Shown piece after piece: positions 46,738-53,231 of a stretch of DNA of 64,000 nt (position 1 is the stretch's first letter; every line of letters begins with the position of its first letter). Source of the DNA: Macrostomum lignano (taxonomy: Eukaryota). The stretch lies in the NCBI GenBank assembly GCA_002269645.1, contig NIVC01000094.1, positions 186,001 through 250,000 of the forward strand, in the 5' to 3' direction. A program made the translations under genes and the position numbers. Below the pieces are notes generated by a model. That model was not told where the DNA came from and made no database searches. It saw only the letters and a list, made by a program, of their open reading frames with translations.

Positions 46738-49700
46738 ATGCAGCGAGGCCGCTGGTCCGCCGCGGCCCTGTTTACCGCCTGTCTGGTAAGCCGATCGGCC
46801 AACAGACAGGTCCCTTGTCTTCTTTTTCAGCTTCTGTTTCCTTTGCTTTCTTCTGCTGCTTCTTTGGCTGGAAATTTTCTCAACTTTGGGACCAGACGCT
46901 TTGGTTGAGAGATTTGAAAAAACATCTATCAAGTGCGCCAGCACTCTGTGCCCACCCGTGCGAACTTTGCAGCGCAGACTGGAACTCAGCCAGAAACTGA
47001 TATCGCTGCAGAAAGCAATTTTCCAAGTTTAAAACATTGCAGATCATCTCAGCAGGCGGATCCCGAGCCTGGTTCCTGGCTCCTGACGAGGCTGAAACCA
47101 CCACCGAGTCACCAGCCGACACCGCCACCTCTGCCGACGCAACCCCAACGGCGAATACGGCAGCAGACGCTGGCAAAGTTCAGGAGGCCAGCCCGGAGCA
47201 CAGGAGAATTGTTGAGCAGAATCTGCTCAGACTGGTGAGAGACAACTGTCTGATTGAGCTGAGAAGGCTGAAGCCACATTGCGGTTCTGTGTGAAGATAG
47301 CGGTATTCTGAAGAAGCACAAAAGGTCAGAACAGGACAGAACATAACAGGACAGGACAGGACAGGAGAGGAGAGGAGAGGAGAGGACAGGACAGGACAGG
47401 ACAGGAGAGGAGAGGAGAGGACAGGACAGGACAGGACAGGACAGGATAGGAGAGGACAGGACAGGACTGGACAGGACAGGACAGGACAGGACAGGACAGG
47501 ACAGAACAGGACAGGGCAGAACATAACAGGACAGGACAGGACAGGACAGGACAGGACAGGACAGGACAGAACAGGACAGGGCAGAACATAACAGGATAGG
47601 ACAGGATAGGAGAGGATAGGAGAGGAGAGGAGAGGGCAGAACTGGGCAGGATAGGACAGGACAGGACAGGACAGGACAGGACAGGATAGGACAGGACAGG
47701 ACAGGACAGGACAGGACAGGACAGGACAGGACAGGACAGGACAGGACAGGACAGGATAGGACAGGACAGGACAGGACAGGACAGGACAGGACAATTTAGG
47801 ACAGGGTAGGACAGAACAGCTTCTATTATAAACTTTCTTCTCTACACAGGCCCAGTCAACTCAAGCACCGGAGCCGGATCACGTGACCAAAGCCTACTGG
47901 CCGGCCGACCAGCTTCCAGCTTGGCTGCCCCATCAGGTTCGCCAGCAGTTTGAGCTAGACAATCAGGAGAGCGTCAGGCAGCGGATTGGGGTGCCAAGAA
48001 CGGTGAGGCGCGGTTATTTTGCTAGGTGAAGACGTGAAGACACTGTTGCTGTACTGGGGTGCTGAGACAGGTATGAGCTATGGGTATGCGAGAGGTAAGG
48101 GGTGTACTTGGGGCAAGGGGTGTGCTTGGGGCAAGGGGTGTGCTTGGGGCAAGGGGTGTGCTTGGGGCAAGGGGTGTGTTAGGGGCAAGGGGTGTGTTTG
48201 GGGCAAGGGGTGTGCTTTGGGGCAAGGGGTGTGTTTGGGGCAAGGGGTGTGTTTGGGGCAAGGGGTGTGTTTGGGGCAAGGGGTGTGTTTGGGGCAAGGG
48301 GTGTGTGCTTGGGGCAAGGGGTGTGCTTGGGGCAAGGGGTGTGCTTGGGGCAAGGGTGTGTTAGGGGCAAGGGGTGTGTTTGGGGCAAGGGGTGTGCTTT
48401 GGGGCAAGGGGTGTGTTTGGGGCAAGGGGTGTGTTTGGGGCAAGGGGTGTGTTTGGGGCAAGGGGTGTGTTTGGGGCAAGGGGTGTGTTTGGGGCAAGGG
48501 GTGTGCTTGGGGCAAGGGGTGTGTTTGGGGCAAGGGGTGGTTTGGGGCAAGGGGTGTGTTTGGGGCAAGGGGTGTGCTTGGGGCAAGTGGTGTGCTTGGG
48601 GCAAGGGGTGTGTTAGGGGCAAGGGGTGTGTTTATGGCAAGGGGTGTGTTTGGGGCAAGGGGTGTGTTTGGGGCAAGGGGTGTGTTTGGGGCAAGGGGTG
48701 TGTTTGGGGCAAGGGGTGGGTTTGGGGCAAGGGGTGTGTTTGGGGCAAGGGGTGTGCTTGGGGCAAGTGGTGTGCTTGGGGCAAGGGGTGTGTTAGGGGC
48801 AAGGGGTGTGTTTATGGCAAGGGGTGTGCTTTGGGGCAAGGGGTGTGTTAGGGGCAAGGGGTGTGTTTGGGGCAAGGGGTGTGTTTGGAGCAAGGGGTGT
48901 GCTTGGGGCAAGGGGTGTGTTTGGGGCAAGGGGTGTGCTTTGGGGCAAGGGGTGTGTTAGGGGCAAGGGGTGTGTTTGGGGCAAGGGGTGTGTTTGGGGC
49001 AAGGGGTGTGCTTGGGGTAAAGGGATGCGTAGGTTGCGGCGTGTGTTAGGGATGTGTAGAGTGTGCGAGAGGTCCCGGGCGGCCTCAAGCTTGGATTGAC
49101 AGGGGCGAGGGATGAGGGATGGGGGTGCCAGAGGTGTGAGGGATCTGAGCGAGATGTGTCTAATGGTACAAATTCTGGTTACGCCCGTATTCTGTCATGT
49201 GAATTGTTGAACCACACGATTTGATATTTATCGCTGAATCAATTCAAAGTTATTTAAATCCGCTACAACAACAGTCTTCGACGACAGCAACGCCAGCTGT
49301 GGAGCACGTGACCCGCGACTATTGGGAAAATTTTCCCAATTGGGTCAATTTAAAGGTCAAGGAGGAGATTCAGCGAGAAAATCGGGAATTCGTGAGAAGA
49401 CTGAGCAACACTGGGACTGAGGTAATGTGACTAGAAGACGAGAAGACAGACAGACAGACAGACAGACAGACAGACAGACAGACAGACAGACAGACAGACA
49501 GACAGACAGACAGACAGACAGACAGACAGACAGACAGACAGACAGACAGACAGACACACAGACAGACAGACAGACAGACAGACAGACAGACAGACAGACA
49601 GACAGACAGACAGACAGACAGACAGACAGACAGACAGACAGACAGACAGACAGACAGACAGACAGACAGACAACACAGACAGACAGACAGACAGACAGAC

Positions 49701-52700: not shown

Positions 52701-53231
52701 CATCGAGCCAGAGCAGTGCAGCGGCTAACGGGTCCGCCCAGAGTACCCGAGTTCGAATCTATGTTCATAAATATTGGCCTGTGGGAGGGAAGTCAAGACC
52801 CTGTGTGAGTGGCCCCAGAGACACTCAGAACTGGCACTCAGAGGACCACAGAAACGCATTGAAACCTGCCCCCACCCGAAGGCCCCAGAGACACTCAGAA
52901 CTGGCACTCAGAGGACCACAGAAACGCATTGAAACCTGCCCCCACACGAAGGCCCCAGAGACACTCAGAACATGGCACTCAGAGGACCACAGAAACGCAT
53001 TGAAACCTGCCCCCACCCACAGCCTACATCCACGCCGCCAGCCTGCCGGCCCACTGCGAGCTGCCACAGGACCGCGGCTTCTGCTCCGATAAGAGCCGGG
53101 TCCGCCTCGCCCGCGTGTACTTTTATAGCAAGCGGCAAAACCAGTGCAAGTTCATGGTGAACTTCGGCTGCAGCAGGAACCAGAACTACTTCAATAGTCT
53201 GGCCGACTGCTACAACAGCTGCGGCCTGTGA
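46738..53231 (+). CDS. Secreted protein with four exon-encoded 49-51 aa HVT-W-P-W repeats and two Kunitz domains (46738-46785, 47043-47234, 47850-48002, 49275-49421, 50298-50444, 50538-50687, [50968-51039], 51514-51816, 52210-52432, 53023-53231)
   Basis: Spliced signal peptide [16 protein letters not shown]|IISAGGSRA. All junctions are GT-AG and in frame. Kunitz domains CRQQLDW...[41 protein letters not shown] and [10 protein letters not shown]...[41 protein letters not shown] at 53411. The bracketed exon is uncertain. Confidence 0.85.
47330..47815. repeat. (GGACA/GGAGA)n repeat, intronic
   Basis: Directly visible. Confidence 0.97.
48095..49015. repeat. 18-bp G-rich minisatellite (ggggcaaggggtgtgttt), intronic
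   Basis: About 50 copies, each with two G4 tracts. Confidence 0.97.
49443..50262. repeat. (GACA)n microsatellite, intronic
   Basis: Directly visible. Confidence 0.98.
50757..50950. repeat. 30-bp minisatellite (ccggacaatttcaattgcagaccctg[ct]ccc)
   Basis: Six copies visible. Confidence 0.95.
51100..51345. repeat. 39-bp minisatellite containing CCAATCACAG
   Basis: About 6 copies of ggagctcagagttgctgcccaatcacagcagggtgagc[ta]. Confidence 0.92.
52810..53020. repeat. About 70-bp tandem repeat x3 abutting a splice acceptor
   Basis: ggccccagagacactcagaactggcactcagaggaccacagaaacgcattgaaacctgcccccac repeated three times. Confidence 0.92.

Follow-up and report, generated by a model that had tools for sequence, protein, structure and literature searches.

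We describe here a gene of Macrostomum lignano for which our evidence supports a secreted Kunitz-type protein with a repeat that has not been described before. The gene occupies positions 46738-53231 (+) of the window, a 64-kb stretch of scaffold NIVC01000094.1 (assembly GCA_002269645.1) that was analyzed as a whole, and a window coordinate plus 186000 gives the coordinate on that scaffold. Scaffold and window were found to be 100% identical over 14.4 kb. When its 9 exons are joined and translated, they give an uninterrupted open reading frame (ORF) of 1572 nt that encodes 523 amino acids, and this is the most parsimonious product of the region. A preliminary description of the same DNA had proposed a secreted Kunitz protein with four copies of an exon-encoded, Trp-rich helical module, which would tether protease inhibitors in a secretion. 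The structural half of that reading is supported by the analysis reported here, and the functional half is what we infer.

The repeat is a module of ~40 residues that contains no Cys and follows the consensus [ED]HVT[RK]x[YH]Wx2-4[LF]PxW[LV]x3V...N. Eight columns are invariant in the alignment of the four cores (H2, V3, T4, W8, P12, W14, V19 and N27). In a six-frame translation of the whole window, a profile built from three copies finds the copy left out at E values of 8e-13 to 5e-17, and the next best fragment has E > 0.01. Thus, the four-fold repetition that had been claimed is far beyond chance. Pfam recognizes two stretches of the protein as Kunitz domains, in agreement with the two domains proposed before (PF00014, 53.8 bits against a cut-off of 21; the best stretch is residues 325-371). 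No Pfam family besides Kunitz_BPTI is found in the whole 523-residue protein.

Gene model and domain order

The introns of the gene are GT-AG without exception, and exons 1-8 begin in phase 0. The exons are given below together with one doubtful extra exon; PAA85316.1 and PAA58190.1 are GenBank proteins that we return to with the other public records.

Exon 1, 46738..46785 (+): start codon and first 16 residues of the putative signal peptide; ATG, then a GT donor.
Exon 2, 47043..47234 (+): end of the putative signal peptide (IISAGGSRA, then WF), an acidic Thr/Ala/Pro-rich stretch and a short predicted helix; AG/GT, phase 0.
Exon 3, 47850..48002 (+): linker AQSTQAPEP and module copy 1 (core 47877-48002); leave-one-out E = 8e-13; within PAA85316.1.
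Exon 4, 49275..49421 (+): linker SSTTATPAV and module copy 2 (core 49302-49421); leave-one-out E = 1e-13; last exon of PAA85316.1.
Exon 5, 50298..50444 (+): linker ADATTEPPA and module copy 3 (core 50325-50444); leave-one-out E = 5e-13.
Exon 6, 50538..50687 (+): 10-residue linker and module copy 4 (core 50568-50687); leave-one-out E = 5e-17.
Exon 7, 51514..51816 (+): Pro/Thr/Gln linker, Kunitz 1 and the first Cys of a 6-Cys insert; matches to Pfam PF00014 and to bikunin and TFPI in the PDB.
Exon 8, 52210..52432 (+): the other five Cys of the 6-Cys insert, with no family match; within PAA58190.1.
Exon 9, 53023..53231 (+): Kunitz 2 and the stop codon; best PDB matches are SmCI and boophilin.
Doubtful extra exon 6b, 50931..51039 (+), in intron 6: used by the UniProt model A0A1I8GTI0 only.

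The four module peptides were all found on exons of their own, at the coordinates and in the plus-strand frame that had been given for them. These exons are symmetric phase 0-0 cassettes of 147-153 nt each with AG/GT flanks. The signal peptide, as read from the sequence, is split by intron 1, which had also been claimed. It consists of MQRGR, a hydrophobic stretch of 17 residues and SRA, with WF after the putative cleavage point and small residues at -3 and -1. The sequence of exon 1 is the same in two paralogous loci, L001 and L003, and equals the first exon of PAA85316.1, and the junctions of exon 2 recur in PAA85316.1 and in the UniProt models A0A1I8F4T2 and A0A1I8GTI0. An AATAAA motif is located at 53411-53416, 3' of the exon 9 stop.

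From the N- to the C-terminus, the product has the signal peptide, the acidic Thr/Ala/Pro region, the four modules, a Pro/Thr/Gln linker, Kunitz 1, the 6-Cys insert and Kunitz 2. The domain order of the preliminary description therefore stands as far as a spliced signal peptide, the modules and then two Kunitz domains are concerned, but the Cys module had been placed after both Kunitz domains and lies between them instead. Neither this insert nor the exon 2 region has a match in Pfam at E <= 10. Each of the modules is Cys-free and has a T/P/A/Q linker of 9-10 residues ahead of it, much as described earlier, and the linker between module 4 and Kunitz 1 has 21 residues, mainly Pro, Thr and Gln. 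Since the Ser/Thr/Pro-rich composition of the linkers fits mucin-like O-glycosylation, we suggest from sequence that the modular protein is probably secreted and O-glycosylated on its linkers.

We treat the doubtful exon 6b as probably intronic. It is skipped in A0A1I8F4T2, and its reading frame needs 7 C in the run at 50937-50944, where the window has 8 C, L001 has 6 C and L003 has 7 C. In every assembled copy, exon 6 can be spliced directly to exon 7 without loss of the frame. Five introns of the gene carry one different set of tandem arrays each, namely (GGACA)n of ~500 bp, an 18-mer in 51 copies, (AGAC)n in 205 copies, a 30-mer with a 39-mer, and a 70-mer. Within intron 6, each unit of a 30-bp minisatellite of 6.3 copies (50754-50942) contains the sequence ttcaattgcag, which looks like a good 3' splice site. 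The acceptor of exon 6b is supplied by the final unit, and the variable C-run lies next to it.

The Trp-rich module

The module copies are ~69% identical at the DNA level. In pairwise comparisons, the proportion of synonymous differences (pS) is 0.50-0.65, the synonymous divergence (dS) is 0.8-1.5 and the ratio of nonsynonymous to synonymous divergence (dN/dS) is 0.2-0.8. Since the synonymous sites are almost saturated and dN/dS stays below 1, the duplication is ancient and the peptide has been maintained. Thus, the modules arose via ancient duplication of one phase 0-0 exon, and a fixed set of residues has been kept. No further copy was found elsewhere in the 64-kb window. The helix of exon 2 was considered as a possible degenerate fifth copy, but the spacing of its V and N does not fit.

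A 12-nt string, GA[G/T]CACGTGACC, is kept in all four module exons (47874-47885, 49299-49310, 50322-50333 and 50565-50576) and includes the E-box-like CACGTG. Three synonymous sites in this string are unchanged, compared with a synonymous difference of 0.5-0.65 otherwise, and a post hoc estimate from the codon usage of the gene puts the chance of this at ~1e-4. The string could have been conserved through codon bias, through a role as a splicing enhancer or through gene conversion over a short tract.

That the module is helical, as had been proposed, is supported by AlphaFold2. For module copy 4, with the other three copies as the alignment, the predicted local distance difference test (pLDDT) score is 85.3, and helices are located at residues 5-9 and 17-35. 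In the model, a loop that contains Pro (LPxWLP; NLPAWLP in copy 4) connects a short helix (RDYWE) to a polar helix of ~19 residues. In this model, the conserved residues V3, Y/H7, W8, L/F11, W14, L/V15, V19 and F/I/L23 probably form a small aromatic/hydrophobic core by which the N-terminal turn is held against the helix. The 214-residue array of four modules, predicted without an alignment, shows the helix pattern of the single-copy model in every copy, at a pLDDT of 52 that makes it unreliable. In the same model, the exon 2 region is helical at residues 2-16 with low confidence.

The preliminary description matched the module to no domain that it recognized, and our searches of Pfam, PDB sequences, PDB structures and 1.84 billion proteins have likewise brought no credible match. 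In Pfam at E <= 10, neither the whole protein nor the single copies give a match to the module. A module profile finds no relative among PDB sequences (best E 1.6, designed proteins), and a Foldseek search of the PDB with the 40-residue model gives nothing below E 7.9. The profile search of 1.84 billion representative proteins returned a single match, P0002, which we reject because the HVT..YW half of the module is missing. This match is a translated tandem repeat (GWLPHQDRAEL) in which 'WLPHQ..R..EL' occurs nine times at ~7 bits each, and it is spurious. A word-indexed search with the repeat region returned a garbled model of the same gene only.

Metagenomes were scanned with patterns. The first scan gave no matches and the second gave four, three of which contain stop codons. 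The remaining match (L007, 2798-3673 (-)) is a bacterial PhyH-family ORF with HVTRAYWEALPAWI directly after the dioxygenase domain. This segment resembles the N-terminal half of the module, but the pattern forced most of the match and the context is unrelated, so that the likeness is probably due to chance.

These negative results should be read with the content of the libraries in mind, since they hold very few flatworm proteins, and the 1.84-billion set is made up of representatives only. In the 90%-identity cluster that contains this gene (P0003), the representative is a 223-residue fragment, and the members include an N-terminal fragment of 182 residues and the 1386-residue A0A1I8GTI0. Because the representative-only search saw the 223-residue fragment, the module-bearing entries were missed. 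Thus, with few flatworm proteins and a hidden full-length model, the lack of relatives is weak evidence for lineage restriction. Literature searches on the gene identifiers, on Kunitz proteins in Macrostomum and on Kunitz proteins in flatworm adhesion found nothing relevant.

Kunitz domains and known systems

Among PDB sequences, the 523-residue protein matches Kunitz chains only, i.e., SmCI, bikunin, boophilin and TFPI (E 6.5e-7 to 5e-5), and the best matches of Kunitz 2, SmCI and boophilin, extend over residues 463-522. The Cys spacing is C-x11-C-x15-C-x7-C-x13-C-x3-C in Kunitz 1 and C-x8-C-x20-C-x7-C-x12-C-x3-C in Kunitz 2. Both fit the C1-C6, C2-C4, C3-C5 pattern in canonical order, with a loop insertion in each. 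In Kunitz inhibitors, Lys or Arg at P1 serves trypsin-like targets. When the two domains are compared with BPTI numbering, P1 is Ser in both (CSSS in Kunitz 1 and CSDK in Kunitz 2). There are also insertions, of 3 residues between Cys1 and Cys2 in Kunitz 1 and of 5 residues just after P2', on the primed side, in Kunitz 2. Neither domain thus combines Lys/Arg at P1 with an undisturbed binding loop, as a canonical trypsin-type Kunitz domain does. Since P1 is Ser and insertions are found in or beside the reactive loop, canonical trypsin inhibition is unlikely. Both domains are probably not classical trypsin inhibitors, and a role as specialized binders or narrow-specificity inhibitors appears more likely.

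The Kunitz/BPTI signature, with six Cys in canonical order, is shared with bikunin, TFPI, tick boophilin and SmCI. This protein differs from them in the Ser at P1, the loop insertions and the unmatched 6-Cys insert between the domains, and the four Cys-free helical modules ahead of its Kunitz domains are found in none of those proteins. In HAI-1/SPINT1, which is extracellular, a small disulfide-rich module separates two Kunitz domains, an arrangement that is also seen here. However, the insert of the present protein is not an LDL-receptor class A domain (no Pfam match), and MANSC and a transmembrane segment are absent. Companions of the papilin/WFIKKN/lacunin type (TSP1, WAP, Ig, follistatin or PLAC) were not detected in this gene by Pfam.

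For the module itself, an analogy is offered by bacterial albumin-binding GA modules and helix-turn-helix docking domains, which are small Cys-free helical binding modules on Pro/Thr linkers. The modules described here are similarly small, at ~40 residues, predicted to be all-helical, repeated and placed on flexible Thr/Pro-rich linkers. However, they have no sequence or structural match to the GA modules or docking domains, and those are bacterial or intracellular.

Proposed role and alternative readings

We suggest, with a probability of about 0.45, that the 523-residue product is a secreted modular protein whose modules hold it in a secretion or matrix. Each module would be an autonomous alpha-hairpin, displayed on flexible and probably O-glycosylated linkers. 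Four such modules, flexibly spaced, would act as a multivalent binding or self-association array. This array would localize and anchor the protein, or cross-link it, in an extracellular secretion or matrix. A more far-reaching version is that the module founds a domain family not described before, made up of autonomous alpha-hairpin mini-domains with a Trp core and no disulfides. In macrostomids, these would serve as a multivalent extracellular anchor or self-assembly unit (in mucus, adhesive, eggshell or seminal secretions) and as a matrix address for the non-canonical Kunitz domains. We regard this version as tentative and, taken as a whole, rather unlikely.

Some observations weigh against an anchoring array encoded by a single gene. 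The long helix of the module is polar and weakly amphipathic, and the net charge of the module is ~0. Because of the pLDDT of the array model, the packing between modules cannot be judged from it. The comparison of paralogous loci is powerless on constraint: L001 matches the window exactly, both in the exons and over 1880 nt of unique intron, and L003 differs from the window mostly by small deletions typical of assembly error. In addition, no transcript-based record was found for junctions 4-5, 5-6 and 6-7, which are found in automated UniProt models only. The two automated models considered here, A0A1I8GTI0 and A0A1I8F4T2, are both from an earlier assembly; the former is chimeric with downstream genes and the latter is frameshifted. 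The GenBank annotation also splits the N-terminal and Kunitz parts between genes, Mlig025689 for the former and Mlig023298/Mlig032897 for the latter.

The alternative that survives best is that the modules are a passive spacer, i.e., a semi-rigid, glycosylated helical stalk that projects the Kunitz domains and does not itself bind anything specifically. The strongly polar helices with their many E, R, K and Q residues, the Thr- and Pro-rich linkers and the low confidence of the tandem-array model would all be in keeping with a stalk. However, the invariant H, V, T, W, P, W, V and N persist despite near-saturated synonymous sites. Because these residues outlast synonymous saturation, a specific fold or contact surface is favored over a compositional spacer, and we consider the stalk improbable.

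Close behind the stalk, at slightly longer odds, is the production of two proteins from the region. The module exons would then encode a separate secreted repeat protein that ends in an intron by read-through or polyadenylation. A second mRNA would come from the Kunitz exons, e.g., through trans-splicing of a spliced leader to the acceptor of exon 7. Trans-splicing is widespread in M. lignano, and its GenBank annotation is based on RNA-seq and transcript assemblies that were cut at trans-splice and poly(A) sites, with ORFs called by TransDecoder (PMC5730564). Read-through past the exon 6 donor meets a stop after 14 codons. The transcript-based entries are also separate. PAA85316.1, a 182-residue protein from the paralogous locus L003, equals exons 1-4 residue for residue and has two further residues that are encoded by the intron, since its coding sequence extends 6 nt into intron 4. 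PAA58190.1, PAA91109.1 and an out-of-frame protein of 188 residues, P0004, represent the C-terminal part. The first two have 223 residues, start at an internal Met (ATG 51577) and confirm junctions 7-8 and 8-9, and the C-terminal part is 100% identical to 'hypothetical protein BOX15_Mlig032897g2 [Macrostomum lignano]'.

Nevertheless, the details of these entries fit one gene better than two. PAA85316.1 is flagged partial, and since this transcript-based protein equals exons 1-4, junctions 1-2, 2-3 and 3-4 are transcript-supported. Kunitz domains need the secretory pathway, and the 223-residue GenBank product has no signal peptide. Upstream of the internal Met, the frame stays open as far as the acceptor of exon 7 and is in phase with exon 6, and no stop codon interrupts the N-terminal ORF within the exons. 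At L003, the third genomic copy (NIVC01000337.1), the split coincides with apparent assembly errors in exons 5-7; at 8600-9010, exons 5-6 have many deletions of 1-13 nt and almost no substitutions, and exon 7 has a 1-nt indel. These errors explain both the GenBank split and P0004.

The two parts are also joined in two independent automated models. A0A1I8GTI0 reproduces the exon 2-9 junctions and places the four modules and the two Kunitz domains in one protein, with exon 6b in addition, and A0A1I8F4T2 reproduces exons 1, 2, 3, 6, 7, 8 and 9. Exon 5 is tied to exons 4 and 6 by identical junctions in A0A1I8GTI0, and no transcript-based record was found for it. PAA85316.1, PAA58190.1, PAA91109.1, A0A1I8GTI0 and A0A1I8F4T2 all come from the locus of the 523-residue model or from near-identical copies, and their exon junctions are identical to those of the model. 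Since the signal-less product, the open in-phase frame, the lack of an exonic stop, the L003 errors and the two joining models all favor one gene, we consider it very probable that the module and Kunitz exons belong together. The public entries, named 'hypothetical' or 'Kunitz domain-containing', are all fragments, frameshifted or chimeric, and none of them gives the 523-residue product or names the repeat.

It is still less probable that the protein is a polyprotein precursor from which the modules are excised at basic sites as free peptides (antimicrobial, pheromone-like or signaling), with the Kunitz part as a carrier or as protection from proteolysis. In its favor are the repeated units of similar size with linkers between them, the high Trp and Arg content of the modules, and the RR or R-x-x-R motifs in the tails of the helices. 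However, these basic motifs are not conserved in position, and they fall within the predicted helix and not in the linkers, where dibasic sites are absent. In addition, a module with a net charge of ~0 is not cationic, and its conserved residues resemble a folding core.

Lastly, although the introns are filled with satellites, the reading that the repeat is an artefact, with chance similarity or exons that are non-coding repeat remnants, is effectively refuted by leave-one-out E values down to 5e-17, an intact reading frame with canonical splice sites, dN/dS < 1, the presence of exons 1-4 in a transcript-derived GenBank protein and the position of the module exons outside every tandem array.

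The window contains other genes besides the one described here. A separate gene at ~7967-13530 (+) has a long mucin-like TTTEEP repeat, at least 5 Kunitz domains, a WAP domain and Ig I-set domains, and is papilin/WFIKKN-like. Thus, a second Kunitz-bearing secreted gene is located 33 kb upstream. At 39626-40648 (-) there is an intact ORF for a 340-residue transposase of the Tc1/mariner type (HTH_Tnp_Tc3_2, a Sleeping-Beauty-like HTH and DDE_3), and exons of a pyridine nucleotide-disulphide oxidoreductase gene (glutathione/thioredoxin reductase-like) lie at 17572-18803 (-).

The 523-residue model corrects database records that are wrong or incomplete. The presence of the only public full-length model behind a shorter cluster representative is also a warning for searches that use representatives only. 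Lineage-specific secreted repeat proteins are common, and the gene described here is a candidate component of a Macrostomum secretion. In the metazoan extracellular domain repertoire, Cys-rich modules dominate, and modules of ~40 residues are usually stabilized by disulfides. A disulfide-free, helical extracellular module of this size would be unusual in that repertoire, and it would represent a compact candidate scaffold.

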